DNA from: Thalia democratica
Lineage: Eukaryota
Reading direction: 5' to 3'
Length of the DNA: 64,000 bases
NCBI GenBank assembly: GCA_965202585.1
Contig: OZ241827.1
Location: forward strand, 75,330,001-75,394,000
A model generated the notes under the pieces. The model was not told the DNA's origin and did not search any database. It worked only from the letters and a program-made list of their open reading frames with translations. Position numbers and translations under genes: made by a program. Shown here piece after piece: positions 1,113-52,600 of this stretch. The number at the start of each line of letters is the position of its first letter. The first letter of the stretch is position 1.

Positions 1113-1150
1113 CTTAAGCGCTTTCGGAATGTCCAAATTCCCTTATCAAA
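1113..1150 (-). ncRNA. Putative minimal hammerhead ribozyme motif (inverted pLTR copy)
   Basis: Exact reverse complement of 1731-1768. Confidence 0.5.
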
Positions 1151-1190
1151 ATACTAAACACTCACTAGTTAAACTAACACAAAATAAATA

Positions 1191-1598: not shown

Positions 1599-1730
1599 TC
1601 CATTTTGTCTTAATTGTTTATAAAAATCCATTTTTGTTAATTACTTGTCGTTTTAATTAGTTGTGTTTTTACAAATGATATAATTTCACTCAATTTATTT
1701 GTGTTAGTTTAACTAGTGAGTGTTTAGTAT

Positions 1731-1768
1731 TTTGATAAGGGAATTTGGACATTCCGAAAGCGCTTAAG
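1731..1768 (+). ncRNA. Putative minimal hammerhead ribozyme motif in Penelope pLTR
   Basis: TTGATAA-G-GGAAT(ttggac)ATTCC-GAAA-GCGCTT: core boxes with a U3/A8 swap, a 5-bp stem II and a palindromic stem III (AAGCGCTT). Stem I pairing is weak. Confidence 0.5.
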
Positions 1769-4700: not shown

Positions 4701-6144
4701 AAAATTTCTAAAATAACCTACGGGTAATACAGCTCCCACTAAAAATTGTAGAACAAAACAAACAAAAAACAAAAAAGTCTCTTACTAAAACTAAATAATT
4801 ATAGTAACAGTCATTTGTCTAGTAATACTTCCAGAAAAATTTTAAATTGTATTTTTGACTTTTACACTATTTTAGTTTCTAACAAATATCAAAAATAAAC
4901 TATTGATTTTTTCAATATTTAGAGCAATCTGATACTAAGTTTTTGAAACTTTAGACATACTTAATAGTATTATATTTTTGTTGAATAACATGAAAATTTA
5001 CTAAAAAATTAAAAATATTCCAGATAAACGTATTTCAAAAGTTTTAAAATAGTATTTTATTCAACTACTGTAATAATTAATGTTCTAAACAATTTTAGTA
5101 TAAAAATAAGGCTATTAAACACTAAGCTACGATAGAAAAATTGTACACATTATACTTGGAGTTACTACTAAAGTTTGGTAAAACTGCCATATAATTCTTT
5201 TTTTCACCACACAGACTTGTTTTTTGCTTACAAAACACTTAAATACTTAAAAAATAGGCGAACTATAAAAATACTTTATTAAGTTCAGAATACATAAATG
5301 ATTGTTTTAATGAACATTAAGTAGCCAGTGTTTAATTCTACAGAATACTTAGATAAGTCAAGATAGCAATGTCAAGCAATCAACCAAAAGCTATATCAGA
5401 TGAGCATCTGAAAAAGCTGTATTCGAATGCGTTCAATTACCACACAGATGATGGCATTTTAGCAACAAAACTACAAGCCAAAGTTTGTTTTATTTTTTCA
5501 TGTGACTGTTGTTAGTTATTAAAAAAAAATAATTATTTACTTTTTTACAAAATATAAATAATTTAAATAAAAAATATAACGCTTGCTACCAAAGAAGTCT
5601 TAATCTCTTAGTTAGATGTTTTTTGTTCATTTTTTAATAAAAATTTGTATCTTTTCTAATTATTATTTATTATTTTTTCTTTAGAAAATTAAATAAAAAA
5701 ACTTCTGCAACAATAGTTAATTATACAAGACACATCATTTTTTCCTCGATGTTTCTTATTAAATTTTATATGTAGGTTTTCTTTGAAACGTACGGTGCTT
5801 GGTTCAGGAAAGGTGGCAGAGTGCCTAAAATTTTGTACTGGGAATGGGGAGATATTAAGTTTGTCACCGATGGAAATGGTAAAGTGTCTGGTGCAAAGTT
5901 CAAACATTCTCCAAATGTAAGTTTTTTTTTAGTTAAATTCTTGCATGACATAAGAATCATTAAAATATTCAATTTTATTTTACTGAACCAGATTCATATG
6001 TAATCATTTTGAGCTTACTCATGTTAAAAACTTAGTTACTAACTTTTTGAACAAGCAATTGTATGTAGGGTATTTACCACTATTGCACGGAGGTACACTT
6101 TTGTTTAATAGTTACACTTCAATTTAGTTCTATTTTATTCAAGT

Positions 6145-8419
6145 TGAAGAATAACTCCTTGTCAATTTAGTTTAATAATTTATTAACAATGTAAAATCTA
6201 AAACGAAAATAAGTATAAATATAAACACTAAAATGAGCTATAGATTAGTTATTCTACATCCCCTTCAGCTCATTTAAGATAATAACAAGTTTAAGGCAAT
6301 GACATAGCTCGTCAAGAGGGGATTTAAACAAGTAACAAAAATATTTTACTAAGATGAGACTAAATTTTATGCATTAACAAAGCTAAATTGACTTAAATAA
6401 AAAAAATCTTTAAACAAGGGAATTATTTAAAGAAAAACAAAACTGAAATAAAACGCATTAAATAAATCCAAAACAATTTAAATTCATGCAATTCCACGCT
6501 GAATCCTTTCTGGCTCAGCAATCATCACTATCAGCACCAATTGAACACTCAGCACCAACTTTTGTGTAAACAGGAACAAACAGACTTCACTTACGGTAAT
6601 TTCTACTTTGGAGTACTCCACTCTCAAGCTTCCCTGGCGTATTGAAGTCTTTCAACCTACGCAAAGCAAGCGGCACCTTGTTTTTTTTGAGAACTATAGG
6701 AGAAGGAATGTACTCTTCCTCAACCTCTTCATGATTCGCTTCAGGCTCACTGGTTTTACCAGTATTGGCACTGTTGGAATCCTCTGTAATCTTTACAGAA
6801 GAATCAGGACGTTGATGACCAACATTGCACTCCTGTGAGCTTGGTAGATTACCGCACCAACCATGGGAAGTTTTTACTTCAATGCTTGTTGAGGCTGGGT
6901 TGTACATCCTTAAAAACTTACTCTTTCTCCGAGTAAGTCTCCGTGAACCATCAACTTGACTACATACTGATCATGTGGAAGCACCTCCATTACAACTCCA
7001 CTTCTGTCCCATTTACGTGGATGACTGCCGCTCTAGCTTTGCAGTAGACACCTACTGCCAACGTACAAAGGTCGCAATTTTCTAGCTTTGTGGTTGACAG
7101 CTCCACTGAAGTCTTGAAATCTATCACTATCTAGGCTGCCTGATTCAGTAACATTGGACCTTAGCAGTCTTTTTGCTTGCTTTACAGCGACTTCTGCTCT
7201 TTCATTTGACTTTGGATAGTATGCAGCTTGAATTAGAGTTGAATCCTGAGCTGAACCTTGAGTTGAAGTTAAATCCGGATCTGAAACTCGAGTTAGAATT
7301 TTTCTTCGATTCGGAAAAAGACGCACTGATTCATAAGAACTCCAAAAGTAATATCTATCTAGACCGTAATCTTCTATCAGATTTCTAACGGATCCCGTGC
7401 CACCGTTTCTTCAAACTGAGATCTGTGAATTTTCCAAACCGAAACGTGAAGTAAACTTGGAATGTTGGAAGTCGACACTTTCGAGTTGGTTGAGACGGCT
7501 GTCAGAAAGTGAAGAGTTGTGAAACTCAACCGAACGGACTGGAATTTCTGATGCGATTCCATAAGTTTCATCTTCATTAGTTTTTTCAGCTGCATATTCA
7601 GAATTTTCAGCCTTAAACGGAAGTTTGCATGGTTTTCATGGACTTTGCTTCCGCTTGGGCAACTGCAGGTTGCCTCGTGCGAATTGAGTTAACTTTGATC
7701 TTTTTCACTCAAACTTGCAAAAACTTTAGAAAGCTGATAAGGCAACTGAGAACCAACACTGGGAAAATCTCTATCTATAATAAGAAGATCAACCATCGTT
7801 TCATACGAGAGAAAAAACTTAGTCACTGAGTTACTGACATAAATAATACTGTTACAGCTAATCACCTCATCCTTTGGAGACATTCCACTGATAGTAGCTC
7901 TAAAGCGCCTATAATGTTTATTGAAGTTTGGTTAGCAGCCCAAATTTTGACTGATACGGGAAGTAAGTCATTCTTTCCAAAACCAGCATTGTGAAAATCT
8001 TTCCACCCCCAAAGGTTTGATTGTGCACCAGTATTAGCTAAAGCACTTACCCATGCAAACTTTTTTGTGCCATGTCTAGCAATCTTGACTGATGCACGAG
8101 GATGGTCAGTCGTTGCCTTGGCTTTACGCAAGGAGTTCTTGCTGAATATGGTGTTATTCAACATGATTCTTTTAATTGCATGTAGTGACATTATTTGGAT
8201 ATCTTATTGCATAAAATCAGAATGATCAGCTTGGATTTGAACAGCATTAACCTTTTTTGATTGATTACGCCAACAAGATAGACAATGTCTGAAAGGCTTT
8301 TTATTTCAATTACCTTTTTCTTTAAAAGGATAGAAAAGCTTTTTACAGTTCTGGCAAGGAACATGTTGGGACTTATCTCCTAATTTGATACGTCCCTTCT
8401 TCTGACGTTGAAAGGAAGA
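6145..8419 (-). mobile_element. Ty3/Gypsy LTR retrotransposon remnant, truncated copy (3' LTR 6145-6258; gag and 5' LTR deleted)
   Basis: TG...CA LTR preceded by CAAGT, with the polypurine tract adjacent. Integrase C-terminal motifs (AYYPKSN.RAEVAVK; HDQYVVKVDGS) and protease region (SALANTGAQ) are present. Junction at 8420 jumps to sequence matching ~38317. Confidence 0.9.
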
Positions 8420-8420
8420 G

Positions 8421-11400
8421 ACTTACCTTTGTTTAAAATTTCTACTAGGTTTTTCAAGTTTAAGAAACGATCTTTAAACTAGCTCTATAATTTAATTAGT
8501 TTTATTCTACTTTTAACAAACTTAATTTGTTGTATTATAACAAAATTTTAAATATGGTATGCTTAAAAAAATCATAGGTTCTTTTCCACACTGGTGACAA
8601 GAATTGTCCGGTTAAATCGCTGTTGATGTATAAACAAAGGAACAGCAACAGTCACGACCCAAACACACCTTTTTTGCAATTTTGCACGCAATTTTATTCG
8701 ATGAACACTGATAACCCGCTTACTTTCTCTGCATGGTACGCAAACACAGAAACGGGAAAAGCAAATGTTACGTACATAAGTAACATTATGGCTAAAATGT
8801 GTGGTAAGTTGTATCTTTAATTTCGCTTCTTCTAAAGTCTTTTTCAAAACCATCTACTACATTTTTCATTATAGGTGGACAAAATAACCAACAAAACGAG
8901 CTGTCTTTTTGGAAGGAAAAGCACTACACCAACCTATGTATTCTTGAAACAAGTAAAATCAGAACGCCACAAGAAAACTGTCAAGTTACAATAAAACAAG
9001 TTCTCAACATCAACGATTTGTTTAGAGGTTACTCCTGTTGCGAACTAAAGCAAGCTGCTACAACATCGAGTGGACCAAGTTCTGCTACATTGGCAAGCAA
9101 CCGTCAGAGTCTTTCTCCGCCTCCTACTAAGAGGCCACCAAACATTTTTCTTCCTAACATCTATCAAGCGTACAAGAATCAGAAGAATTTTTCATCAATG
9201 TGAATAGAAAAATTGTAGAAAAGTTACACTATATTCTTCTTAACTGTCAGTTCAATAATGTAACGCTGCTGAACGAACTTCTCGAGTATGGGGTCAACCC
9301 TTCGGATGATGAACAAATAAAAGCTCTAATGGAACTCCATTCTTACCAATTAAACTTCGTTTGCCCACCTCTTGCTGTAAACAACCAGGAAAAGGAGATC
9401 TACAAACGGTACATCGCCGAAGCTTGTTCGTTTATCGATTTCAGGAAAATAATTTTGAGTCAACCGTTCAGAACTTTCTATGCCAACATGCTTAAGTTGA
9501 AGTTTGGCATGGATCCAGAAAATCATCTCCACGTTCGCGCCATTGAGAAAGCGTCCGATATCATATCAAGAAGATAGGCAATAAAGAAGATAGGCTTCCG
9601 GTTTTACAATGTTTTTACCAATTGCACATTTCTTTTAGCATTATTTTACGTTCTGCTGTTGTTATGCAGTTTTTCGCTTTAACAGTTTGCTTTACTTTTT
9701 AATGTTTTTAAGGAGACTGAAAAATCTTACTGCTTAATTATGCTTAAATCCACGTTTAAAATAAAGTTTTTACCACTCGTACGTTTTTTCAAGCATTTAT
9801 TAATTTCCTCTAACTTTATTATGCAGTTTCTCACACTTGCAGTATCCAACTTTTTCAAAGTTTTTATGACGACTGAATATTTTCTACTTCTAATTTCTTT
9901 CTAAATGGGTGTTTTTAGTCGTTTGATTTTTTAGAAAATTTTATGCATTTACAAGTACTTTAAATGCATATAGAAACTTTTTAAAAGCCGTTTTTACAGA
10001 GTTAATTTGCTGTTTATTTGTTTTAGTTATGAACTTGAATTAAAATTAATCTAAATAACTTACTGTTTCTTAGAAATGATTACTAAATAAAAGTATGTTT
10101 TGATATGCATTTTGACAAAAAAAATGTTTTTTGAATCTTAAGCTGACACAAGTAGATTTAATTTGTGTCTATAGAATAGTAGAAAAAAGTAAAATTTTTA
10201 AAAACAAAATAATGTTGTCATTCTATAACTAAATCTTTCACGAAGAACTAACAACTTAAGTAAAAAACGGTTAAAATACCAAAAAAGTAAAAAAATAATT
10301 ATATTACTTTAGTAGCTTTTAAAAAATGTAAGTAAACTTAAAAATTATCATAAGCAAAAAACTAATAATTACACAAAAATTTAAATTTGTAAAAGTTAAA
10401 GAAATAAATTATTTAAATTTAAAATTATTTTAGAACGTAATATACAAGAATTAATTTTGAAAACATGTTTTTTTTATGACCAGATAAAATAAAAAGTATT
10501 CAATAATCAGGAGCATCATACTTATTTGATCATTATTTATATATAAAATCGAAAGTATTTTAAACTTGTATTGAAACAGAAGAAAAGTTTTTAAAGTTTC
10601 AAACTTGCATGTAAAAAAAACTTCGTAATTTCCTTAAAACGTAAATAAGCGGAAACTTGCTAATAATATGCATACAAGTTTTATGCTTGCTTTCATTCAA
10701 AATATCAGCATTTAGTATTTGTTGGAAAAGAAAAAGGTAATAAAAAGTTGACAAGATTAAGTCAAAAAATAAAAGTTATGTTTTCGACCGAAGTTTTCTC
10801 AGAACTTAATCAATACAGCTAAAACAATTTAATTGTGCTTAGATAAAATTATGTAAAAAAATTGTTTAATGCGGTCATAGCAAACAGTCATTCATCCATA
10901 TACTAGGATTATCAAAACCAATTTTTTTTTAATAGTTAATTAAGTGTTATATACGCTAAAACAGTAATTGACTAGAAAGCATTACTTTGACAGGTATAAG
11001 AACGAAAGATTTGAAAAGTTGAGAAATTTCTATGTAGCTTGAAAAGTACTTATACTTGCTCATGAAGTCAATTTATTTTTTTAGTTTAAATTGGTTGCTT
11101 TCTACACTTTACTAGTAAGTAAGCATTTATAATCTTTGTCAATAAAAAAAGTTTAAAGCGTAAATTCATTTGCTGTATATCTTCTTATTTGAAAAATAAC
11201 CAGGTTTAACAAGTAGTCAAAGTGTTTAAACATATGTTTGAGTATATTTTAATTAAAATAATTTCAAAAATCTATGATGTTTTAGCCTTAAAATATGTTT
11301 GTGAAGTTTTGCAACATAACTACATAAGGTCTTCCAAATTTGATTATGTCTAATTTTTTATGTATATTTTTTTTATAAATTTATTCTTATGCTTATACAG

Positions 11401-14400
11401 GGGTAAGCAAACTGCAACCTAGAGTAAAATGTAGCTGGTAAAGCGAAATCTGAGGCCCGTTATGTACTTTTTAGTCTAAAACTTACTTTTTGAAAGCAAA
11501 AAAAAAGTGGTCTAAACAAATGCTGTTAACTATTCAACATCAAAAAAGTGCTTGTGCTTTATCATTAGTTATTTATTTTATTTATCATTTTGAATAAGGA
11601 ATGCAAACTGCACCTTACTGTATTATAATGACCCTTGGCATAATATTAATGTTTAACAAAAAAAAATCTCTTATTTAAAAGGGTCCTTATTTATATTGTA
11701 AGTTTAAAACGGTTAAGGCTTTATATACAATTAAATTCAAGCACGATTTCTGAAAAAATTTTCAAGCAAAAGTTTCTACTTAGCTTTAGGTTTAGTTTAA
11801 CCGTTCTTTAAACTAAACCAGAAGCATTGAGGAATACTACATTATTGCATAAAATAGTATGTTAGAAGTTGGCAACGGATAAGACTCACAAGCAAGACAT
11901 AAATCCCTCAATGTACATTTAGCATGGAATAATTATTATTTTAAAAAACAATTTGCAAATTATTAGATTAGCCTAACTATAAAACTTACCTTTGTTTAAA
12001 ATTTCTACTAGGTTTTTAAAGTTTAAGAAACGATCTTTAAACTAGCTCTATAATTTAATTAGTTTTATTCTACTTTTAACAAACTTAATTTGTTGTATTA
12101 TAACAAAATTTTAAATATGATATGCTTAAAAAAATCATAGGTTCTTTTCCACACTGGTGACAAGAATTGTCCGGTTAAATCGCTGTTGATGTATAAACAA
12201 AGGAACAGCAACAGTCACGACCCAAACACACCATTTTTGCAATTTTGCACGCAATTTTATTCGATGAACACTGATAATCCGCTTACTTTCTCTGCATGGT
12301 ACGCAAACACAGAAACAGGAAAAGCAAATGTTACGTACATAAGTAACATTATGGCAAAAATGTGTGGTAAGTTGTATTTTTATTTTGTTCTTTCTAAAGT
12401 CTTTTTCAAAACCATCTACTACATTTTTCATTATAGGTGGACAAAATGACCAACAAAACGAGCTGTCTTTTTGGAAGGAAAAGCACTACACCAACTTATG
12501 TATTCTTGAAACAAGTAAAATCAGAACGCCACAAGAAAACTGCCAAGTTACAGTAAAACAAGTTCGCAACATCAACGAATTGTTTAGAGGTTACTCCTGT
12601 TGCGAACTAAAGCAAGCTGCTACAACATCGAGTGGACCAAGTTCTGCTACATTGGCAAACAACCGTCAGAGTCTTTTTCTGCCTCCTACTCAGAGGCCAC
12701 AAAACATTTTTCTTTCTAATATCTATCAAGCGTACAAGAAACAGAAGAATTTTTTCATCAATGTGAATAGAAAAATTGTTGAAAAGTTACACTATATTCT
12801 TCTTAACCGTCAGCTAAATAATGTAACGCTGCTGAACGAACTTCTCGAGTATGGGGTCAACCCTTCGGATGAAGACCAAATAAAATCTCTAATGGAACTC
12901 CATTCTTACCAATTAAACTTCGTCTGCCCACCTCTTGCTGTAAACAACCAGGAAAAGGAGATCTACAAACGGTACATCGCCGAAGCTTGTTCGTTTATCG
13001 ATTTCAGGAAAATAATTTTGAGTCAACCGTTCAGAACTTTCTATGCCAACATGCTTAAGTTGAAGTTTGGCATGGATCTAGAAAATCATCTCCACGTTCG
13101 CGCCATTGAGAAAGCGTCCGATATCATATCAAGAAGATAGGCAATAAAGAAGATAGGCTTCCGGTTTTACAATGTTTTTACCAATTGCACATTTCTTTTA
13201 GAATTCTTTTACGTTCTGTTGTTGTTATGCAGTGTTTCGCTTTTACAGTATGCTTTACTTTTTAATGTTATTAAGGAGACTGAAAAATTTTACTGCTTAA
13301 ATCTCCATACATCCACTTTAAAATAAAGTTTTTACCACTCGTACGTTTTTTCAAGCATTTATTTACATTCCTCTAACTTTATCATGCAGTTTCTCACACT
13401 TGCAGTATCGAACTTTTTCAAAGTTTTTATGACGACTGAATATCTTCTACTTCTAGTTTCTTCCTAAATGCGTGTTTTTAGTCGTTTGAATTTTTTTGAA
13501 AATTTTATGCATTTACAAGTACTTTAAATGCTTAAAGAAACTTTCTAAAAGCCGTTTTTATAGAGTTAATTTGCTGTTTATTTGTTTTGTTTAAGTGCTT
13601 TGAATTAAAATTAGTCTAAATAATTTACTGTTTCTTAGAAATAATTACTAAATAAAAGCATTTTTTGATTTGCATTTTGACAAAAAAAATGTTTTCTTAA
13701 TCTTAAGCTGACACAAGTAGATTTAAAGTGTGTTTATAGAATAGTAGAATAAAGTATAATTTTTTAAAAACAAAATGATGTTGTCATTCTATAATTAAAT
13801 CTTTCACGAAGAACTAAAAACTTAAGTAAAAAACGGTTAAAATACCAAAAAGTAATAAAATAATTATATTACTTTAGTAGCTTTTAAAAAATGTTAGTAA
13901 ACTTAAAAAATATCATAAGCACAAAACTAAAAAATACACAAAAGTTTAAATTTGTAATAGTTAAAGAAATGAATTATTTAAGTTTTTAATTATTTTAGAA
14001 CGTACAATATAAGAATTTATTTTGAAAGCGTGTTATTTTTTGTGACCAGAAAAAATGAAAAGTATTCAATAATCAGGAGCATCATACTTATTTGATCATT
14101 ATTTAAATAGCAAAATCGAAAGTATTTTAAACTTGTTTTAAAACAGAAGAAAAGTTTTTAAAGTTTCAAACTTGCATGTAAAAAAAAAACTTCGTAATTT
14201 CCTTAAAACGTAAATAAGCGGAAACTTGCTAATAATATGCATACAAGTTTTATGCTTGCTTTCATTTAAAATATCAGCATTTAGTATTTGTTGGAAGAGA
14301 AAAAGGTAATAAAAAGTTGATAAGATTAAGTCAAAAAATAAAAGTTATGTTTTCGACCGAAGTTTTCTCAGAACTTAATCAATACAGCTAAAACAACTTG

Positions 14401-31200: not shown

Positions 31201-34200
31201 AAGAATTTTGATAAATTAACTGAAAAGGCAAAAACTGGTTAGAATTAAACTAACATAACTTGTTAAATGCTTAAAGTAGTAAAAAATTATAAAAATTTTT
31301 GAAACAAAGAAATAAAGTTTCGACTATGACGAAGCTTAGTCTAGTTTTCTTTTCAGCAAAAGTTTTTAATATTATTAATGGTCGGTTGAATACCGTTTTT
31401 CAGTCAACTATAAACAGTTTGTGTTTAACATCTGCATAAAAATTATAAAAACCTTATTATTTATTTTACCTCATTCGGAAAATTTTGTAGCTATATCTTT
31501 TTAATTATCATTTTTTAAATTTAGATAGCCTCACACTTATAATAAGTGGTAGGAGTAACAAAACACAAATCTAATCATAAAGTTAACTTCGTTCTTATAA
31601 AAGAATGTTATTACAAAACATAATGGATTTTAATTAGTACTTTTGTAATATATTATACTTTTATACTAAAGCTATTATACACTTCTTAAAAATAAATTTT
31701 CCTAGCATTAGTTAGTCTAATTTTTTTTAAATATCCTAACTTGTATGTAATAGTCGTGACATCTTAACTAAAATAGAAATGGAGTACTTTATTAGGGTTT
31801 CCAACTATTGAAATTCGGGCAATTCAAAACCAAAAAATTCAAATAATTAAGAAACTTTAAAGGGCCAAAACTCAAAAAGCAGTATGCATTTTAATTAAGT
31901 AAATATGTACGTCTAACTAATACCTACAAACACTTTTTGTTTTTTTGCAGACAATAAAATGCTTTTTGTGATATGGCTAATATAAATTAAAAATTATAGT
32001 GTTTTTTTTAATTTTTTACTAATAATTTATAAATTCAGGTTGTTCTTATTATCATAAGCTTATCAATTTAAATATATTATGTTTTTTGAGTTGACCTACA
32101 TATTTCTAACATAAAAATAATAATATACTAATTTTAGAACGTGGCCCTTCAACTATATTTTTAAGAACTTGAATTGTCCGTACTTGAATTGTCATGTAAA
32201 AATTTTTTTTAGTATTTTATATAAACTAATCTTTAATATTAAATTTGTAGATTAATAATAGATAGAAGGCTATATCAACTAAGTTTAAAGTTTTTACAAA
32301 GACTTGCCAAAAAAAAATTATGTTTATTTCAAAATTTAATTTTCTAGTGTTTTGAATAAAAATGTTTAATTTAACTTTTATTTGTTACAATAAACAAAAA
32401 AAAAAAAAACTTTTCTAAAGTTTTTTTTAACGTTAGTTTTAAAAATGGCTTTAATTAAACTTGTTTTTTTAATTCTCTTACAAAAAATATATGTCTATCT
32501 CATTCACTTATTTAATTTATTTCAGAATAAAAAAACAGTTTTACAATGATCTAAATTACTTGCTTTTGTTTTAAAAGTTTTTGCAATGCCCCTTAAAACA
32601 TGATAAACATTATGAAATAACATAAAATTTTAATTAAACTTGCATTACACTTACTTTATTTATTTTCAAGCAAAATTTTTTTATTATAAATTTCATGTGT
32701 ATATAATGATATCCCTAAAGTGAATATTTTTATGTTTTAAGTAGAAGTTTGATAAAAAACAGTGTACTGTACTTACAAAACATTTGTTATTAAAAACATA
32801 ATCAAAAATAAATGATAAAAAAAATCTTTGTTTTAATGACCAGTGAACTGACCTAACTGGATATTTTTTGTTAATTTTACCATAGAATATAAATAAACAA
32901 GAACACAACGACAAATTAGTAAAGTAAAATTTCAAACTTTTAAAATTTTTAGAATAAACTAAATTTTTCTTACTTCAATAAGGAAGGCGAAGTTCTAGAT
33001 AACATTTTTTTTTACTATTTCTTGTTTTTAAAGTTTTAAGCTTAGACTGTATTTTGATAGGAATGTTATTAAAAAGACTTGTGTACTTTTTGAGTAAAGT
33101 TTTTATATGTAAATATTTGTTTAATTTCCTTTTCCTTGATTTCATTGATTATTTTATTTTTTGAGGTTATAAATTTTACATTATAACAATTGTTTTTCAG
33201 CTAGCTAACAAAAAATTGTAAAACCACGAGTCGATAACGTCTCAATAACTGTAACTTTCTTTAGTACATCAGGTTCTTTGACCAAACCTTTTGAGCGCTT
33301 TTTTATTTGTTGAAACAATATTAATAATTTTTAAAATATAGTTATATAAGCATCGTAATATAAGAGATTTATTTTATAGCCTCAGTTTTTCATAAAGTTC
33401 GACACCAGATTTATAAGTTGAATTTTATTTAATTGATGTATTGTCACTAGATGTTACAAAAAAAACTATATTTTATAATCAAAAAAATCGATACAAAATA
33501 CTACTCACATACTACAAAATATATTATACATCTTTTTTAATGATTTTGTTAATTTTGTGTCTGAAAGCATAAACAGTTCAAAACGACCACCGGGTAATGC
33601 TGCTCAAAAAATGTAGAAGTAAATAGAGACTCTTACTAAAAATAAAAAGCTTAAGACTTTTAATTCTACCTCCCATTTCTTTTTTGCTTAAAATGTTTAA
33701 ATAAATGATTGTTGTAATGAAATCAAGTAGCCAAGGTTAAATTCTACAGAATACTTAGATAAGTCAAGATAGTAATGTCAAGCAACCAACCGAAAGCTAT
33801 ATCAGATGAGCATCTGAAAAAGCTGTATTCGAATGCGTTCAATTACCACACAGATGATGGCATTTTAGCAACAAAACTGCAAGCCAAAGTTTTTTTATTT
33901 TATTCTTCTGACTGCTTTTACTTATCTATACAAGTTATTTAACTACTAATGTTTCCACAAAAGATGGTTTTAGTAAAAAAAATGTGAAAGCTCATAACTG
34001 AGGTCAATCGATTGGTGTTGCAAAAGACCTTTCGGTCATCGTGCCTACCATCATATATTTTGTAAAAAAAATTGATAAGTTTTTAATAGAAGTGTATACT
34101 ATTATAAAAGTTTAATGGTTGCTACCAAACAGGTCTTAATCTCGTACTTAAATGCTTTTTATTGACTTTTTAATAGAAGTTTGTATATATTCTTATTATA

Positions 34201-35123
34201 ATCAATTATTTATGCTTTATAAAATCAAATAAAAACTATACTGCAACAATAGTTAACTAAACAAGACGCATCTTTTTTTCCTCGATGTTTCTTATTAAAT
34301 TTTATTTGCAGGTTTTCTTTGAAACGTACGGTGCTTGGTTCAGGAAAGGTGGCAGAGTGCCTAAAATTTTGGACTGGAAATGGGGAGATATTACGTTTGT
34401 CACCGATGGAAATGGTAAAGGGTCTGGTGCAAAGTTCAAACATTCTCCGAATGTAAGTTTTTTCTTAGTTAAATTCTTGCATGACATAAGAATCATGAAA
34501 AATAATAAATCTAATTGAATCAGATGTATATGTGATTATTTTGAGCTTAATCATGTTAAAAACTTCGTTATTAATTTTTTTAAACAAGCAATTTTATTCA
34601 GGGTATTTACCACTTTTGCACGGAAGTACACTTTTTTTTGATAATTTTACTTCAATTTAGTTTTGTTTTTATTCAAGTTGAAGAATAACTCCTTGTCAAT
34701 TTAGTTTAATAATTTATTAACAATGTAAAATCTAATACGAAAATAAGTATAAATATAAACACTAAAAAAGAGCTATAGATTAATTATTCTACATCCCCTT
34801 CAGCTCATTTAAGATAATAACAAGTTTAAGGCAATGACATAGCTCGTCAAGAGGGGATTTAAACAAGTAACAAAAATATTTTACTAAGATGAGACTAAAT
34901 TTTATGCATTAACAAAGCTAAATTGACTTAAATAAAAAAAAAAACTTTAAACAAGGGATTTATTTGAAGAAAAACAAAACTGCAATAAAACGCACTAAAT
35001 AAATCCAAAACAATTTAAATTTATGCAATTCCACGCTGAATCCTTTCTGGCTCAGCAATCATCACTATCAGCAGCAATTAAACACTCAGCACCAATTTTT
35101 GTATAAACAGGAACAAACAGACT

Positions 35124-35765
35124 TCAGTTACGGTGATTTCTACTTTGGAGTACTCCACTCTCAAGCTTCCCTGGCGCATTGAAGCCTTTGAACCAACGCA
35201 AAGCAAGCGGCACCTTGTTTTTTTTAGGAACTATAGGAGCAGGAATGTACTCTTCCTCAACCTCTTCATGATCCGCTTCAACCTCACTGGTTTTACCACT
35301 ATTGGCACTGTTGGAATCCTCTGTAATCTTTACAGAAGAATCAGGACGTTGATGACTAACATTGCACTCCTGTGAGCTTGTTAGATTACCGCGCCAACCA
35401 TGGAAAGTTTTTGCTTCAATGCTTGTTGAGGCTGGGTTGTACATCCTTAAAAACTTTCTCTTTCTCCGAGTAAGTCTCTGTGAACCATCAACTTTGACTA
35501 CATACTGATCATGTGGAAGCACCACCATTACAACTCCACTTCTGTTCCATTTACGTGGATGACTGCCGCTCTAGCTTTGCAGTAGACAACTACTGCCAAC
35601 GTACAAAGGTCGCAACTTCCTAGCTTTGTGGTTGACAGCTCCACTGAAGTCTTGAAATCTATCACTATCTAGGCTGCCTGATTCAGTAACATTGGACCTT
35701 AGCAGTCTTTTTGCTTGCTTTACAGCGACTTCTGCTCTTCCATTTGACTTTGGATAGTATGCAGC
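35124..35765 (-). pseudogene. Gypsy integrase C-terminal fragment
   Basis: AAYYPKSNGRAEVAVKQAKRLLRSN and LPHDQYVVKVDGSQRLTRRKRKFLRMY, with frameshifts. Confidence 0.8.
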
Positions 35766-36227
35766 TTGAATTGGAGTTGAATCCTGAACTGAACCTTGAG
35801 TTGAAGTTAAATTCGGATCTGAATCTCGAGTTAGAATTTTTCTTCGATTCGGAAAAAGATGCACTGATTCATAAGAACTCCAAAAGCAATATCTAACTGG
35901 ACCGTAATCTTATATCAGATTTCTAACCGATCCCGTGCCACCGTTTCTTCGAACTGAGATCTGTGAATTTTCCAAACCGAAACGTGAAGTAAACTTGGAA
36001 CGTTGGAAGTCGACACTTTCGAGTTGATTGAGACGGCTGTCAGAGAGTGAAGAGTTGTGAAACTCAACCGAACGGACTGGAATTTCTGATGCTATTCCAT
36101 AAGTTTCATCTTCATTAGTTTCTTCAGCTGCATATTCAGAATTTTCAGCCTTAAACAGAAGCTTACGTGGTTTTTCATGAACTTTGCTTCCGGTTGGGCA
36201 ACTGCAGGTTGCCTCGTGCGAATTGAG

Positions 36228-36752
36228 TTAACTTTGATCTTTTTCACTCAAACTTGCAAAAACTTTAGAATGTTGATAAGGCAGCTGAGAACCAACACTG
36301 GGAAAATCTTTATCTATAATAAGAAGATCAACCATCGTTTCATACGAGAGAAAAAACCTAGTCACTGAGTTACTGACATAAATAATACTGTTGCAGCTAA
36401 TCACCTCATCCTTTGGAGACATTCCACTGATAGTAGCTCTACAAGCGCCTTTAATGTTTATTGGAATTTGGTTAGCAGCCCAAATTTTGACTGATACGGA
36501 AAGTAAGTCATTCTTTCCAAAACCAGCATTGTGAAAGTCTTTCCAGCCCCAAAGGTTTAATTGTGCACCAGTATCAGCTAAAGCACTTACCCATGCAAAC
36601 TTGTTTGTGCCATGTCTAGCAATCTTGACTGATGCACGAGGATAATCAGTCGTTGCCTTGGCTTTACGCAGGAAGTTCTTGCTGAATATGGTGTTATTTA
36701 ACATGATTCTTTTAATTGCATGTAGTGACATTATTTGGGTATCTTGTTGCAT
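36228..36752 (-). pseudogene. Gypsy aspartic protease region
   Basis: VSALADTGAQ (DTG motif). Confidence 0.85.
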
Positions 36753-36893
36753 AAAGTCAGAATGATCAGCTTGGATTTGAACAGCATTAACCTTTTTTGA
36801 TTGATTACGTCAACAAGATAGACAATGTCTGAAAGGCTTTTTATTTCAATTACCTTTTTCTTTGAAAGGATAGAAAAGCTTTTTACAGTTCTG

Positions 36894-37692
36894 TCAAGGA
36901 ACATGTTGGGACTTATCTCCTATGTTGACACGTCCCTTCTTCTGACGTTGAAAGGAAGAAACTGCAGATATAGTCCGCGAATTCTCAGTTGCATGGTGTC
37001 CCATTTCTTTGCTTTCAATAAAGGAAATTATATAAAATGATGACCTGGATAAGATATCTTCAGTACTGAGAACTTCTCTTCTTATGTCATCGTCCCCAAC
37101 GCCAGCGAGTATCAAGTCTTTTATTGCTTCTTCTGTGAAGCTCGTCACATTGCTTTTCCAACAGTCACACTCACTGACTGTAGTGAAATAGCAGATTTCT
37201 GCTTTGCTTCGTACACGTGTGGCAAAAGTTCTAAACGGTTCATCATGGTCCTGATATAGGTTCATGAGTTCTGCTCTCTTTACACCAATAGCAACTTTTA
37301 TGACTGCAATCGACTCCATCAGTTTAGCAACGTAACTTTCTGATTTGGCCATCAGTCGAGGATCACTTGCTAATATAAGAGGATATAAGATCGTCAAGCT
37401 TGTCCTGCGCACACTGAAAAAGCTGTATGCTTGCATTTCAGTTGCTTATATTCGAACCAATCTTGAATGCCTCCCACCTCCGAATGAAATAAAGCCATTT
37501 CTCTCGGCTGATCCCCCGGTCAACCCTTGGTCGAATCAGTTGAGGTGCATTTGGCATTACTCCATTATTGGATAACCAAGAATCTTGCTGATGCTCCAAT
37601 TTGTGGAGGTTGAGAAGGCTACTCACTACATCATCGGATCGATCTGGCGTCTGGAACTCGCATCTACGTATTGGGCACTTTACTGCAACCAT
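36894..37692 (-). pseudogene. Gypsy gag, frameshifted
   Basis: MVAVKCPIRRCEFQT...APQLIRPRVDRG...RWEAFK and QDHDEPFRTFATRVRSKAE...DDIRREVL, spread over two frames. Confidence 0.8.
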
Positions 37693-40600
37693 TTTACTTT
37701 TCTCAAATTGTTGATAAGATTTTACATGAAGAATAACTCCATGTCAATTTAGTTTAATATTTTATTAACATTGTAAAATCTGAAACGAAAACAAATATAT
37801 ATATAAACACTAAAATCAGTTATAGTTTAATTATTCTACACAAGTTTAGTTTTTCATTAAAACTTAGTTAAACTTTACTAAGTTGTACATTTATTTAGTT
37901 TTAAAATTTAGTTTAATTATAACTTAAGTTGTGAAACTGAAATATTGTGCGAAAGTGACGCCGTAAAAGTTTGTACAATGATTTTGAAGTACTAACTTTT
38001 ATTTAGCTTTGTTCAACCATTTTTAAACTTTAAAATACAGTATTGCTTAAATTTAAAGTATATCGGCAAAATTTTCAATTGTACATCGAACTGCTCAAAA
38101 TTGTCAAATTTAAAAATGTTTTACATAAAAAATGTTTCTTTTACCTTATATATTGTAAAAATCTTACACTTAAAAGCAGAAACATGTAACTAGCTATTTT
38201 TATGCTGTTCTTGTTTTGACTGTGTTTACATTTAATTTCTTTTGTAAAATAAAGTTTGTACATCTTTTCTCAGAAAAAAATCAATTTGCAAATTATTAGA
38301 TTAGCCTAACTATAAAACTTACCTTTGTTTAAAATTTCTACTAGGTTTTTAAAGTTTAAGCAACGATCTTTAAACTAGCTCTATAATTTAATTAGTTTTA
38401 TTCTACTTTTAACAAACTTAATTTGTTGTATTATAACAAAATTTTAAATATGATATGCTTAAAAAAATCATAGGTTCTTTTCCACACTGGTGACAAGAAT
38501 TGTCCGGTTAAATCGCTGTTGATGTATAAACAAAGGAACAGCAACAGTCACGACCCAAACACACCATTTTTGCAATTTTGCACGCAATTTTATTCGATGA
38601 ACACTGATAATCCGCTTACTTTCTCTGCATGGTACGCAAACACAGAAACGGGAAAAGCAAATGTTACGTACATAAGTAACATTATGGCAAAAATGTGTGG
38701 TAAGTTGTATTTTTATTTTGTTCTTTCTAAAGTCTTTTTCAAAACCATCTACTACATTTTTCATTATAGGTGGACAAAATGACCAACAAAACGAGCTGTC
38801 TTTTTGGAAGGAAAAGCACTACACCAACTTATGTATTCTTGAAACAAATAAAATCAGAACGCCACAAGAAAACTGCCAAGTTACAGTAAAACAAGTTCGC
38901 AACATCAACGAATTGTTTAGAGGTTACTCCTGTTGCGAACTAAAGCAAGCTGCTACAACATCGAGTGGACCAAGTTCTGCTACATTGGCAAACAACCGTC
39001 AGAGTCTTTCTCTGCCTCCTACTCAGAGGCCACAAAACATTTTTCTTTCTAATATCTATCAAGCGTACAAGAAACAGAAGAATTTTTTCATCAATGTGAA
39101 TAGAAAAATTGTTGAAAAGTTACACTATATTCTTCTTAACCGTCAGCTAAATAATGTAACGCTGCTGAACGAACTTCTCGAGTATGGAGTCAACCCTTCG
39201 GATGAAGACCAAATAAAAGCTCTAATGGAACTCCATTCTTACCAATTAAACTTCGTCTGCCCACCTCTTGCTGTAAACAACCAGGAAAAGGAGATCTACA
39301 AACGGTACATCGCCGAAGCTTGTTCGTTTATCGATTTCAGGAAAATAATTTTGAGTCAACCGTTCAGAACTTTCTATGCCAACATGCTTAAGTTGAAGTT
39401 TGGCATGGATCCAGAAAATCATCTCCACGTTCGCGCCATTGAGAAAGCGTCCGATATCATATCAAGAAGATAGGCAATAAAGAAGATAGGCTTCCGGTTT
39501 TACAATGTTTTTACCAATTGCACATTTCTTTTAGAATTCTTTTACGTTCTGTTGTTGTTATGCAGTGTTTCGCTTTTACAGTATGCTTTACTTTTTAATG
39601 TTATTAAGGAGACTGAAAAATTTTACTGCTTAATTATGCTTAAATCCACGTTTAAAATAAAGTTTTTACCACTCGTACGTTTTTTCAAGCATTTATTTAC
39701 ATTCCTCTAACTTTATCATGCAGTTTCTCACACTTGCAGTATCGAACTTTTTCAAAGTTTTTATGACGACTGAATATCTTCTACTTCTAGTTTCTTCCTA
39801 AATGCGTGTTTTTAGTCGTTTGAATTTTTTTGAAAATTTTATGCATTTACAAGTACTTTAAATGCTTAAAGAAACTTTCTAAAAGCCGTTTTTATAGAGT
39901 TAATTTGCTGTTTATTTGTTTTGTTTAAGTGCTTTGAATTAAAATTAGTCTAAATAATTTACTGTTTCTTAGAAATAATTACTAAATAAAAGCATTTTTT
40001 GATTTGCATTTTGACAAAAAAAATGTTTTCTTAATCTTAAGCTGACACAAGTAGATTTAAAGTGTGTTTATAGAATAGTAGAATAAAGTATAATTTTTTA
40101 AAAACAAAATGATGTTGTCATTCTATAATTAAATCTTTCACGAAGAACTAAAAACTTAAGTAAAAAACGGTTAAAATACCAAAAAGTAATAAAATAATTA
40201 TATTACTTTAGTAGCTTTTAAAAAATGTTAGTAAACTTAAAAAATATCATAAGCACAAAACTAAAAAATACACAAAAGTTTAAATTTGTAATAGTTAAAG
40301 AAATAAATTATTTAAGTTTTTAATTATTTTAGAACGTACAATATAAGAATTTATTTTGAAAGCGTGTTATTTTTTGTGACCAGAAAAAATGAAAAGTATT
40401 CAATAATCAGGAGCATCATACTTATTTGATCATTATTTAAATAGCAAAATCGAAAGTATTTTAAACTTGTTTTAAAACAGAAGAAAAGTTTTTAAAGTTT
40501 CAAACTTACATGTAAAAAAAAAACTTTGTAATTTCCTTAAAACGTAAATAAGCGGAAACTTGCTAATAATATGCATACAAGTTTTATGCTTGCTTTCATT

Positions 40601-48447: not shown

Positions 48448-49308
48448 TAAATAACACGTTGAACTTAACAGAAAAACTAAAAAGCAACTAGTACTCTAAC
48501 AGACTTAAACAAGAATTTTTAGCAAGTAAAACTAGTATAACTATTTAATAAAAATATGAATAGATAAATTGTGTGTTATGTATAAAAGTACTGTTATGAA
48601 AAATAAAAAATGCATTAGTTGTCAACTAAAAAAAAAATCAAAAGTATATATTGATACCAAGTGAACTGTTAAAACTTTAAAAAGCAATATTTTTAATTTT
48701 TTTAAGTCGTTACGAAAAACAATTAGAATGCTTTAATTTAATTTAATGTACTGAGTTTCAATTATGCTGTGTAACTTCAGTGCTCCAATACATACAACTC
48801 TATGTTTATCTCAGTAATTTTGGCAAAAATATTTGAGCCAAAAAGTTTACTTTATGAACAGGTAGTTGTTTATTTGGCAGAGCTGAAATCGATAAACAAA
48901 CAAGCTTCGGCGATGTACCGTTTGTAGATCTCCTTTTCCTGGTTGTTTACAACAGGAGGTGGGCAAACGAAGTTTAATTGGTAAGAATGGAGTTCCATTA
49001 AAGCTTTTATTTGTTCATCATCCGAAGGGTTGACCCCATACTCGAGAAGTTCGTTCAGCAGCGTTACATTATTGAGCTGACGGTTAAGAAGAATATAGTG
49101 TAACTTTTCAACAATTTTTCTATTCACATTGATGAAGAGATTCTTCTGATTCTTGTACGCTTGATAGATGTTAGAAAGAAAAATGTTCGGTGGCCTCTGA
49201 GTAGGAGGCGGAGAAAGACTCTGACGGTTGCTTGCCAATGTAGCAGAACTTGGTTCACTCGATGTTGTAGCAGCTTGCTTTAGTTCGCAACAGGAGTAAC
49301 CTCTAAAC

Positions 49309-49654
49309 CAGGGTTTCCCAAACATTTTTGCAAATGGCCCCCTTTAAAGAGTTTGAAAAAGCAATGGCCCCCTTCAACATATAGGTTACTCATAAACTAT
49401 ACACATAAGACCTTTTTTTTTTGCTCTTCATCTTCAACTCAAGAAAATCTAGTGTAAGTTTCTAAACTACCATAAAATACACATAAGACATTTTTTTTTT
49501 TTTTTTTGCTCTTCATCTACAACTCAAGAATATCTAGTGTAAGTTTCAAGTTATGGCCTTATGGCCCCCCCTCTTCCCCCTTTGCTGCTCATGGCCCCCT
49601 GAGTATCTGTCATGGCCCCCTACGGGGCCACTTGGCCCACTTTGGGAAACCCTG
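49309..49654. mobile_element. hAT-type MITE, 346 bp
   Basis: Perfect 14-bp TIR CAGGGTTTCCCAAA. 8-bp target duplication CTCTAAAC (49301-49308, 49655-49662). The other three copies have a single site (GTTTAGAG). Internal ~70-bp tandem duplication. Confidence 0.95.
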
Positions 49655-52600
49655 CTCTAAACAAATCGGTGATGTTGCGAACTTGTTTTACTGTAATTTG
49701 ACAGTTTTCTTGTGGCGTTCTGATTTTACTTGTTTCAAGAATACATAATTTGGTGCAGTACTTTTCCTCCAAAAAAGACAGCTCGTTTTGTTGGTCATTT
49801 TGTCCACCTATAATGAAAAATGTGTAAGATACTATGGAAAAAGACTTAAGAAAAAACAAAATAAAAATACAACTTACCACACATTTTTGCCATAATGTTA
49901 CTTATGTACGTGACATTTGCTTTTCCCTTTTCTGTGTTTGCGTACCATGCAGAGAAAGTAAGCGGGTTATCAGTGTTCATCGAATAAAATTGCGTGCAAA
50001 ATTGCAAAAATGGTGTGTTTGGATCGTGACTGTTGCTGTTCTTTTGTTTATACATCAACAGCGATTTAACCGGACATTTCTTATCACCAGTGTGGAAAAT
50101 AACCTATGATATTACTTAAACTTCTTAAGTTTTAAATTTTGATTTAAAATACAACAAAATCAGATTGCTAAATGTAGAAAAAAAACTAATTAACTAATAG
50201 AGCTAGTTTAAAGATAGTTGGTTAAACTTAAAAAACCTAGCAGAAATTAAAAAAAAAGTAGGTTTTATAGTTTGACTAATCTATTAATGCACAAATTGTT
50301 TTTTTTTTTTAAATGTACAAGCTAATTTTTTTAAAACAAATTAAATACAAAGGCAGTCAAAACAAGAGCATAAAAATAGCTAGTTACATGTTTCTGCTTT
50401 TAAGTGTAAGATTTTTACGATATATAAGGTAAAAGAAACATTTTTTATTTTAAACCTAATAAAATATGACAAGTTTAAGCAGTTCGATGGATAATTGAAA
50501 ATTTGTCGATATTTTTTAAATTTAAGCTATACTTTATTTAAAAGTTTAGAAATGGTTGAACAAAGCTAAATAAAAGTTAGTACTCAAAAATCATTATCTG
50601 AACTTTTATGGCGTCACTTTTGCACAAAATTTCAGTTTCACAACTTAAGTTATAGTTAAATTAAAATTAAAAATAAATAAATGAACAACTTAGTAATGTT
50701 TAATTAAGTTTTAATGAAAAACTAAACTTTAATAAAAAAACTAAATTTAAATATAACATAAGTAATTTAACTATAACCTACATACATATGCTTGTTCAAA
50801 AAATATTAATGTAGCTTTTTTAAATGAATAAGCTCAAAATGATCACATATGAATCTGGTTCAGTAAAATTAAATATTTTCAATGATTCTTATATCATGCA
50901 AGAATTTAACTAATAAAAACTTACATTTGCAGAATGTTTTAACTTTGCACGCAACACTTTACCATTTCCATCGGAGACAAACGTAATATCTCCTCATTTC
51001 CAGTACAAAATTTTTGGCACTCTGCTACCTTTCCTAAATCAAGCACCGTACGTTTCAAAGAAAACCTGCAAATAAAAGAAAATAAGAAACATCGAGGAAA
51101 AAAAGATGCGTCTTATATAATTAACTAATGTTGCAGAAAAATTTTTATTTAATTTTCTAAACAAAAAATAAGTGATAATAATTAGAAAAGATACAAATTT
51201 CTATTAAGAAATTAATAAAAACATCTAACTAAGAGATAAAGACCTTTTTGGTGGCAAGCGTTATACTTTTTATTCAAATTACTTGTATTTTGTAAAAAAA
51301 AAGTAATTAATTTTCATTTTCTGAGTAATAACAGTCAAAAGAAAAAATAAAACAAACTTTGGCTTGTACTTTTGTTCCTAAAATGCCATCATCTGTGTGG
51401 TAATTGAACGCATTCGAATACAGCTTCTTTAGATGCTCATCTGATATTGCTTTCGGTTGATTGCTTGACATTGTTATCTTGGCTTATCTAAGTATTCTGT
51501 AGAATTTAACACTGGCGACTTGATTTCATTAAAACAATCATTTATTTGAACACTTTAATCAAAAAAGAAATGGAAAGTAGATAATAAAGTCTTAAGTTGT
51601 TTATTTTTAGTAAGAGTAACTATTTACTTCTACACTTTTTGAGCAGCATTACCCGGTGATCAATTTGAACTGTTTATGCTTTCAGACACAAAATTAGCAA
51701 AATCATTAAAATAGAAGTGTAATATATTTTGTAGTACGTGAGTAGTATTTTGTATCTAATTTTTTTGATTATAAAATATAGTTTTTTTTTTGTAACATCA
51801 AGTGAAAATACATCAATTAAAAAATTTTCACTTATAAATTTAGTTGTCGAACTTTATCAAAAACTGAGGCTTTAAAATAACTTTCTTATATTACGATGCT
51901 TATATAACTATACATTTAAAATTATTAATACTGTTTTAACAAATAAAAGAGCGCTCAAAAGGTTTGGTCAAGGAATCGTGTAATAAATAAAATTACGGTT
52001 ATTGAGTCGTTATCAACTCGTGCTTTTACATTTTTTTTATTAGCTAGCTAAAATCAATTGATATAATCTAAAAATATTAACCTCAGAAATAAAACTATCA
52101 ATGAAATAAAGGAAAAGTAAACTAAGCAAAAATTTAATAAGTAATGTATGAAAATATAAAAACTTTATTCAAATTGTACTCAAGTCTTTTTAACAGTATT
52201 CAAATAAAAATACAGCCTAAGCCTAAAACTTTTCAAAAACAAGAAATAGTAAAATAATTTTTTTTCTAGAACTTCACCTTTCTTATTGAAGTAAGAAAAG
52301 TTTAGTTTGTTTTAATGATTCAAAAAGCTTAAAATTTTACTTTACTAATTTTTCGTTGTGTTCTTGTTTGTTTATGTACTATGGTAAAATAAATAACAAA
52401 TATCCAGTTAGTTCAGTTCACTTATCATTAAAACAAAGATTTTTTTATTATTTATTTTTGATTATATTTTTAATAACAAATGTTTTGTAAGTACAGTACA
52501 CTGTATTTTATCAAACTTCTATTTAAAACATAACAATATTCACTTTAGGGATATTATTATAAAAACATGAAATTTATAATAAAAAAATTTTGCTCAAAAA

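Follow-up and report, generated by a model that had tools for sequence, protein, structure and literature searches.

The domesticated DUF3504 genes described in animals are KCTD1 isoform b (KCTD1b), KIAA1958, WOC/ZMYM2-4 and QRICH1 (Kojima & Jurka 2011, PMC3212892). A separate domestication has been proposed in tunicates, where a candidate DUF3504 gene of Halocynthia roretzi (BAB40645) has orthologues in Ciona and Oikopleura (PMC3212892), the tunicate gene being listed as BAB40645/XP_002125964/CBY34656. Crypton fossils are also on record in tunicates, and the Cryptons of animals lack terminal repeats and have ends that are hard to see (PMC3212892).

We analysed a window of 64,000 nucleotides from the salp Thalia democratica (assembly GCA_965202585.1, contig OZ241827.1, positions 75,330,001 to 75,394,000), in which a spliced gene occurs in several copies, here called A to D. 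The host is a very AT-rich planktonic, pelagic tunicate, and the family is known so far from this genome and one metagenome contig. The salp genes resemble KCTD1b, KIAA1958, WOC/ZMYM2-4 and QRICH1 in that a Crypton recombinase-like domain with lost tetrad residues lies in an intron-containing, host-type gene and is fused to other regions. They share with the domesticated genes the signs of purifying selection and a block order (FF..F.RG, CPV, WY..G.N) that is found in KCTD1. On the other hand, they have no significant sequence match to these genes and are fused at the C-terminus to another partner region, which is unrecognised. While domesticated DUF3504 genes are single-copy and deeply conserved, the salp family is multi-copy and partly pseudogenised, and the tyrosine that is lost in all vertebrate DUF3504 genes is present in the salp genome copies.

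The comparison with CryptonA elements of animals gives a similar mixture. In kind the two proteins agree, and the Atlas matches of the salp gene's third exon are DUF3504 clusters, but the tetrad is broken (His and Arg II are both Leu), the copies share long flanks holding other genes and the salp protein has a long C-terminal extension, while a C-terminal domain is missing from animal Cryptons. The sequence of Crypton origin inside an intron of bird ATF7IP (PMC3212892) is likewise recombinase sequence kept within a host locus, and it serves best as a collinear template for the conserved blocks; unlike the salp sequence, it keeps the whole catalytic tetrad. The first-pass annotation had regarded the locus as a candidate for an undescribed system. 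That claim to novelty falls, as Crypton-derived DUF3504 genes, the candidate tunicate one included, were described in 2011 (PMC3212892).

Gene structure, copies and transcripts

The intact form of the gene is found in copy B (33775-39473, plus strand), where four exons are bordered by AG and GT and separated by canonical GT-AG introns. Joining 33769-33888, 34312-34452, 38474-38699 and 38770-39473 gives one open frame of 396 codons, or 393 when counted from the ATG at 33775. Exon 1 (33775..33888) runs from this ATG to a donor GT at 33889; its homologous counterpart on TARA Oceans contig L001 (267-392) shares the 3' border. Exon 2 (34312..34452) keeps the frame with its 141 nt, is the predicted site of the Arg-I block FRKGGR and is absent from the TARA homologue. 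Exon 3 (38474..38699) encodes the DUF3504-like core (GDKNCPV ... WY..GK.N). Exon 4 (38770..39473, stop at 39471-39473) encodes a degenerate box II (YTNLCIL ... FRGY), then a linker rich in Ser, Thr and Pro, and finally a helical C-terminal stretch of about 125 residues, of no recognised kind and with no detectable relatives. These exons and splice sites agree with those of the first-pass annotation, which was also right that a real spliced protein-coding gene is missed here by lists of open reading frames.

Intron 2 of copy B harbours a high-copy repeat (34590..37842, minus strand) whose minus-strand ORFs contain gag-, protease- (DTGA) and integrase-like strings, with no Pfam match at E<=0.01. 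The contig depth of this repeat in the DNA runs is 10^3-10^4, compared to about 50 for a single copy. It is also present in copy A (about 6073-8421), is absent from copy C and is not part of the gene.

Copy A (5369..9577, plus strand) has exons at 5369-5482, 5776-5916, 8578-8803 and 8875-9577; its first exon had originally been placed at 5363-5482. Its exon 4 is short by 1 nt (a T6 run reduced to T5, near 9184-9189), which breaks the frame; the missing nucleotide may reflect a true mutation or an assembly error in the homopolymer. Copy D (12141..13140, plus strand) is a 3' half consisting of exons 3 (12141-12366) and 4 (12437-13140), with an open frame and 99.3-99.6% identity to copy B. Copy C (48883..51477, minus strand) is a pseudogene with exons at 51477-51358, 51065-50925, 50103-49878 and 49807-49655 plus 49308-48883. 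Two in-frame stops lie in its exon 2, a 346-nt MITE (49309-49654) with an 8-bp target duplication (CTCTAAAC) interrupts its exon 4, and its 3' end is truncated, with the last ~44 codons missing. The gene had been described as amplified four times, and this holds only in part: A, B and C are full-length loci, D is a 3' half, and B is the only certainly intact locus. Birth and death of the family, also suggested earlier, is borne out for the local copies. The DNA runs also contain a fifth type of the sequence, which represents further copies elsewhere in the genome, so that the family may be dispersed; exon depth summed over contigs in these runs is about 2-6 times single copy.

Within the window the copies sit, together with neighbouring genes, in co-duplicated blocks of 3.5 to >15 kb. 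An inverted duplication, which also carries a CAP-domain gene, has copies B and C at its inner ends, while the 8-kb block shared by D and B also carries cystatin-like genes. A cystatin exon has its acceptor near 42129. A discrete mobile unit with common ends and unrelated flanks was looked for among the copies in the window and not found, and we rejected the view of the copies as discrete transposon insertions because their flanks are co-duplicated. The first-pass annotation would have recognised a transposon by Crypton-like termini and dispersal; within the window the copies are instead found in large segmental duplications.

In run X1, whose behaviour is that of RNA, a spliced contig lacks precisely the 70 nt of intron 3 and bears all six copy D-specific variants. 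In a second splice, copy D exon 3 is joined to a non-coding exon X (10860..11114, plus strand; at least 255 nt, 5' limit not fixed) with its donor GTAAGT at 11115. This second splice, and the absence of the intron 3 joint from three DNA-like runs, led us to reject a DNA retrocopy as the source of the contig. Transcript evidence is restricted to copy D; over exons 1-2 the depth of X1 is nil, and X1 contains no transcript from the intact copy B or any full-length copy. With regard to the RNA-seq check proposed earlier, X1 confirms the removal of intron 3, but only in a truncated copy attached to a non-coding exon rather than to exons 1-2. The copy D transcript could encode at most an N-terminally truncated protein.

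Likely relationship to Crypton recombinases and selective constraint

To assess descent we used Atlas, a protein-language-model search whose score is a lead and comes with no E-value. For exon 3 alone the first match was a DUF3504 cluster (score 0.96, 184 features in common); by the calibration of the tool itself, shuffled sequences reach a first match of 0.95 or higher in about one case in 100. The next matches were DUF3504, DUF3435, NDC10_II, Tyr recombinase and Phage_integrase, and all ten of the ten best matches belong to the same family or clan. The Pfam family DUF3504 also covers active Cryptons. For the exon 2 and exon 4 pieces Atlas recognised no family, returning noise for exon 2 and weak matches for exon 4, among which the U-box/RING-like ones (0.62-0.68) were treated as noise.

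Pfam hmmscan of the four exon translations, searched separately, gave no PF12012 or PF00589 match at E<=10, and the homologue fragment P0001 had no Pfam match to either family. Against 1.84 billion proteins, phmmer with exon 3 found one true match, the TARA fragment; P0002 and P0003 from the same search are repeat artefacts, unrelated by Pfam. Because that search contained no tunicate protein at E<=0.001, the salp family, which like the BAB40645 group would be a Crypton-derived DUF3504-type gene in a tunicate, appears either very divergent from the BAB40645 gene or independent of it. Word-indexed homology searches returned nothing for exon 4 and only the TARA fragment for the exon 3 profile, which had no match in JGI metagenomes. 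The PDB profile search gave only noise, and AlphaFold on exon 4 alone as a single sequence was uninformative (pLDDT 36).

The blocks VFFE..FRKGGR, DGNG, GDKNCPV, PFLQ, WY..GK.N, YTNLCIL and FRGY have the order, and a similar spacing, of the alignment that has been published for animal Cryptons together with KCTD1 and the ATF7IP fossil, a comparison made by eye with no score or chance expectation. The motif string quoted in the first-pass annotation is present in the spliced protein. Its DUF3504/Crypton assignment is supported by the exon 3 Atlas match and by the block order but not by a significant Pfam, HMMER, PDB or structural match in searches of separate exons. On these sequence likenesses, Crypton/DUF3504 descent of the gene is likely, not formally shown.

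In the block alignment all local copies have YTNLCIL in place of YTNHSLR, which puts L-x-x-L at the H-x-x-R site: the His and the second Arg of the R-H-R-Y tetrad have become Leu, and the intact tetrad of an active Crypton is absent. The TARA homologue also lacks H-x-x-R (CTNLCIV), giving a common NLCI[LV]E in place of NHSLR, so the replacement noted earlier holds in this genome and the loss extends beyond it. The nucleophile Tyr, said to be retained, is indeed kept in the local copies (FRGYS), at 32 residues past L-x-x-L compared to 35 in a published Crypton-like sequence; it is not conserved in the TARA homologue, which has FKNRF at this site and lacks all of exon 2. Most likely the product of the family is related to a transposon recombinase but catalytically dead, a protein that could not cut and rejoin DNA because Leu stands in place of His and Arg II and the Tyr is not kept in the homologue.

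The homologue on contig L001 comprises exons 1, 3 and 4 with intron positions identical to those of the local gene. Its exon 3 is 48% identical (E 6e-15), and DNA similarity between the contig and the local gene is confined to exons. Between copy B and this homologue pS is 0.76 (saturated) and pN is 0.275. The homologue is one only, from a metagenome contig, and could be a paralogue; at the sequence level the comparison indicates that a non-catalytic protein, with what would be a host-type function, has long been under constraint. Of the differences between copies A and B, 14 are synonymous and 20 non-synonymous (binomial p about 0.005), with an omega of about 0.36, and among the local copies omega is 0.36-0.5 (p about 0.005), a moderate constraint. 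In exon 2 the local copies show 4 non-synonymous and 1 synonymous changes, without synonymous excess and too few to test.

Several earlier suggestions can be judged from these values. Past purifying selection is upheld by the omega of copies A and B, although non-synonymous changes outnumber the synonymous ones said to be so many. The proposed search for orthologues outside the genome yielded one homologue under strong purifying selection. Domestication as a non-catalytic protein agrees with the loss of H-x-x-R and with the pS and pN of the TARA comparison; against it, only one of four copies is certainly intact and RNA comes from the truncated copy D alone.

Origin of the family and alternative explanations

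We consider it reasonably probable that the locus belongs to a low-copy, lineage-specific tunicate gene family that arose from a Crypton-type recombinase, is non-catalytic, has grown by segmental duplication and is now decaying. The protein would consist of about 215 residues derived from a Crypton-type tyrosine recombinase (a domain of the DUF3504 kind), the Ser/Thr/Pro-rich linker and the helical C-terminal region of about 125 residues. Recombinase chemistry, with its cutting and rejoining of DNA, would be gone; by analogy with KCTD1b, ZMYM2-4 and QRICH1, the protein would most likely work in the nucleus as a module that binds DNA or protein. Instead of transposing, the family would have grown within the window as blocks of 3.5 to >15 kb, neighbouring genes included, underwent segmental duplication and gene conversion. 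Decay would be under way, with B intact, A carrying a 1-nt frame break, D reduced to a 3' half and C dead. Copy D would be transcribed because a tandem duplication placed it behind the non-coding exon X, an exon that probably belongs to the downstream cystatin-like gene.

Alternatively, there may be no host gene here: the copies would be fossils of a Crypton transposon family that was defective or non-autonomous, passively carried by segmental duplications and decaying. Such a fossil would account for the lost catalytic residues, the broken or partial state of three of the four local copies, the further copy types elsewhere in the genome (DNA runs) and the lack of an observed full-length copy transcript, and both the indistinct, repeat-free ends of animal Cryptons and the recorded tunicate fossils are in keeping with it (PMC3212892). 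We nevertheless find it rather unlikely. The dead state is common to the TARA homologue, with synonymous sites saturated, pN only 0.28 and introns at the same positions; long constraint on a protein unable to catalyse transposition is not expected of a transposon and therefore counts against a fossil. In addition, the duplicated blocks reach far past the gene and include other genes, and exon depth in the DNA runs is just a few times single copy. It is improbable that this is an orphan lineage-specific gene with no tyrosine recombinase descent, whose motif likeness and Atlas match arose by chance, as might be suspected from the missing significant Pfam, HMMER and PDB matches, the noise given by the exon 2 and exon 4 pieces in Atlas and the uninformative exon 4 model. 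Against chance, the 0.96 Atlas match names the family that had been predicted independently from motifs, at a level that about one in 100 shuffled sequences attains, all later exon 3 matches are recombinase-fold families, and seven blocks follow the order of the published alignment.

Recruitment of transposons as host genes is already known in animals, and the salp family is real but fairly ordinary; if it were only a transposon fossil, its value would be for annotation alone. Within the reading of a decaying gene family, we tentatively hypothesize an independent and comparatively recent salp recruitment of a Crypton recombinase, in which a new C-terminal domain, helical in structure, was fused to the dead fold. 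Exon 2, with its Arg-I, may already be missing from the working isoform, as in the TARA homologue, and tandem duplication may have created the truncated, promoter-captured copy D. The family would be in an early multi-copy phase of birth and death, not hundreds of millions of years on. To our knowledge, the well-studied Crypton domestications (KCTD1b, KIAA1958, WOC/ZMYM/QRICH1) are all ancient and single-copy, and because of this the route from recombinase to host protein cannot be followed in them. If our hypothesis is true, a tunicate case would be added beside the one proposed in 2011, and a young multi-copy family with the Tyr kept, an exon being lost and intact, broken and chimeric copies together would offer a view of the early steps of domestication.

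Gene model and local copies

The window is strongly AT-rich, with 22-25 % G+C outside genes, and segmental duplications make up most of its length. At locus B, the four-exon model proposed in the first-pass annotation holds: exons 33769-33888, 34312-34452, 38474-38699 and 38770-39473 (+) have AG/GT at all borders and splice into a single 396-codon open frame terminated by a stop, with the ATG at 33775 and an in-frame stop four codons 5' of it. Marine metagenome runs contain DNA identical to this gene. Within the window, BLAST with the exons as queries found all four at three loci, A (5369..9577, +), B (33775..39473, +) and C (48883..51477, -), and exons 3 and 4 only at D (12141-13140, +). The claimed fourfold amplification therefore comes down to three four-exon loci, two of them damaged, and one partial copy. 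Copy D, which lacks exons 1 and 2, is open, is 99.3-99.6 % identical to B and originated by a tandem duplication (8421-11926 versus 11984-15508). At copy A, the locus whose coordinates the first-pass annotation gives, a T6 run in exon 4 is short by one T, breaking the frame; the deletion is missing from all contigs listed for the DNA runs and may thus be an assembly error. Copy C has two stops in exon 2, a truncated 3' end and, in exon 4, a 346-nt MITE (49309-49654) with an 8-bp target duplication CTCTAAAC and inverted ends CAGGGTTTCCCAAA.

The duplicated blocks far exceed the gene in size. An inverted duplication (21512-33922 versus 64000-51324), which includes a CAP-domain gene, has B and C at its inner ends and runs on into them; the 8-kb block shared by D and B includes cystatin-like genes. 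In the upstream flanks (1-5290, 30336-33697 and 54903-51546) B goes with C (85 % identity, A being 76-78 % identical to either), but in the gene region A goes with B (92-94 %), and A and B have a repeat insertion in intron 2 that C lacks. This discordance between flank and gene probably reflects gene conversion or a secondary duplication that begins about 70 nt 5' of the ATG. Summed exon depth in DNA runs is about 2-6x single copy, versus 10^3 to 10^4 for the intron 2 repeat. One DNA-run contig (39075-39324), whose depth is about threefold that of single-copy sequence, combines variants in a way not seen in any of A to D and represents a fifth sequence type; the genome thus has further exon 4 copies outside the window.

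The intron 2 repeat of B (34590-37842) and A (~6073-8421) has a very high copy number (depth up to ~5x10^4 in DNA runs) and carries minus-strand ORFs with gag- and integrase-like strings and a protease-like DTGA motif; no Pfam match was obtained at E<=0.01. The CAP/CRISP-domain exons (145 aa; Pfam CAP, E 4e-11) lie one per duplication arm, at 24395-24832 (+) and 61621-62058 (-). At the exact centre between the arms is an intronless 613-aa ORF (46606-48447, +) with a signal-like N-terminus and two trypsin-like domains (Pfam Trypsin, E 8e-45), of 37-39 % G+C amid 23 % G+C.

Transcription of copy D

We compared contigs of four sequencing runs over 33700-39500. Introns are covered in three of them, which are DNA-like, and the fourth, X1, behaves as RNA. 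A 1,534-nt X1 contig spans exons 3 and 4, skips the 70-nt GT..AG intron 3 exactly and extends about 580 nt past 39500; it differs from B at six positions, all six with the letters of copy D. A second X1 contig departs from the genome precisely at the exon 3 acceptor and continues into sequence matching 11085-11114 perfectly, a stretch with stops in all frames and GTAAGT directly 3' of it. These contigs confirm intron 3 together with the acceptor of exon 3, and the observed transcript consists of a non-coding exon (exon X, at least 10860..11114, +) joined to exons 3 and 4 of D. It could encode at most a protein starting from a Met within exon 3. Exons 1 and 2 have no depth in X1.

In the B unit, the counterpart of exon X has its 3' end at 41026. 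A cystatin/stefin-like gene (ATG 42186; QVVAG motifs near 42509 and 44001) has its ATG exon 1.1 kb 3' of this point, and the tandem duplication breakpoint (11926/11943) lies between exon X and that ATG exon. From this arrangement we infer a putative promoter capture driving expression of copy D. Just 3' of copy B, 42186-44100 (+) holds two tandem cystatin/stefin-like genes with a GGWSD..PATEEVQ leader exon and QVVAGTNY exons; a copy of the pair sits in the D unit, some 26.3 kb upstream. These genes may have as 5' leader the non-coding exon whose 3' end is at 41026 (11114 in the A unit).

Probable Crypton descent and catalytic residues

The motif match to DUF3504/Crypton reported from the first reading agrees with a by-eye comparison of block order and with a protein-language-model Atlas, but has no backing from conventional searches. 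HMMER/Pfam with the exons taken separately, a word-indexed homology search with exon 4 and a PDB search gave no significant match, AlphaFold on exon 4 alone gave no usable model (pLDDT 36), and exhaustive phmmer of exon 3 against 1.84 billion proteins gave one true match only (P0001). Nor did the Atlas recognise the exon 2 or exon 4 pieces on their own. For exon 3 (75 residues), the best named Atlas cluster is DUF3504 (0.96, 184 shared features), the family predicted from motifs, followed by DUF3504 again, DUF3435, NDC10_II, 'Tyr recombinase' and Phage_integrase; the ten best all agree, every one being a Crypton or tyrosine-recombinase family. By the Atlas's calibration, such a first match occurs about 1 in 100 times for shuffled sequences.

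The blocks follow the order seen in an alignment published for Cryptons of animals and the genes derived from Cryptons (PMC3212892, Additional file 4): WFE....F.TRGRE corresponds to VFFETYGAWFRKGGR here, DEDGR to TDGNG, G..xCPx to GDKNCPV, AFFQ to PFLQ, WYENKAIGKNLL to WYANTETGKANV, YTNHS/CLR to YTNLCIL, and IRHY to FRGY, which lies 32 residues past the His position (35 in the bird ATF7IP sequence). Overall, the gene very probably descends from Crypton/DUF3504. That it is an unrelated orphan gene, as the empty profile and structure searches would allow, is improbable given the block order and the Atlas result.

Under the same block alignment, the His and second Arg of the R-H-R-Y tetrad are Leu in every copy, bearing out the reported change of H-x-x-R to L-x-x-L; exon 2 has an Arg where Arg-I is expected, and Arg replaces the second His. 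The putative nucleophile Tyr is kept in the local copies (FRGY), as reported; it is not conserved in the homologue encoding P0001 (FKNRFCCE versus FRGYSCCE).

Constraint and place among known genes

P0001 is an ORF on a 1,268-nt TARA Oceans scaffold (L001). Its exon 1 (267-392) ends ...KLQAK+gt exactly as in the local gene, exon 3 (508-733) has the same length of 226 nt, and exon 4 is still open from 812 to the contig end. A 115-nt intron parts exons 1 and 3, and tblastn found no trace of exon 2. NLCIVE replaces the H-x-x-R block, as in the local family. At the scaffold start (1-147) is a near-perfect 27-nt inverted repeat pair (1-27, 121-147), which may represent a small hairpin element or an artefact of the assembly.

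Of the changes between local copies A and B, 14 are synonymous and 20 non-synonymous (omega 0.36, p ~0.005); B versus C has an omega of 0.44. The earlier remark that many differences are synonymous holds only in part, non-synonymous changes being the more numerous. The excess of synonymous change is located in exons 1 and 3 and the C-terminal region; neither exon 2 (4 non-synonymous changes, 1 synonymous) nor the linker or the box II part shows it, although per-exon counts are too small to be tested individually. Because exon 2 shows no such excess, has stops in C and is absent from L001, we suggest that it is possibly no longer in the working mRNA; at 141 nt, its skipping preserves the frame.

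DUF3504 derives from Crypton recombinases (Kojima and Jurka, PMC3212892), and a tunicate DUF3504 gene (BAB40645 and orthologues) has been proposed as a further domestication (PMC3212892), so the family's kind is already known. Vertebrate DUF3504 genes have lost the Tyr and the second Arg (PMC3212892), whereas the salp family keeps the Tyr. The family is unusual in being young and multi-copy, in retaining the Tyr, in its unrecognised C-terminal region and in the chimeric transcript that copy D yields.

Crypton fossils are listed in tunicates (PMC3212892), and the copies could be such a fossil family, a reading we consider rather unlikely beside the constraint seen in L001. We favour, as the somewhat probable reading, a host-type dead-recombinase gene family in birth-and-death. 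Compared over exons 1 and 3 and the first part of exon 4, B and L001 have a pS of 0.76 (saturated) and a pN of 0.275, and their DNA similarity is limited to exons. This pattern, taken from one contig of one homologue, suggests that a protein already lacking H-x-x-R has been under purifying selection for a long time, and it is chiefly this long constraint that speaks for a non-catalytic role in the host.
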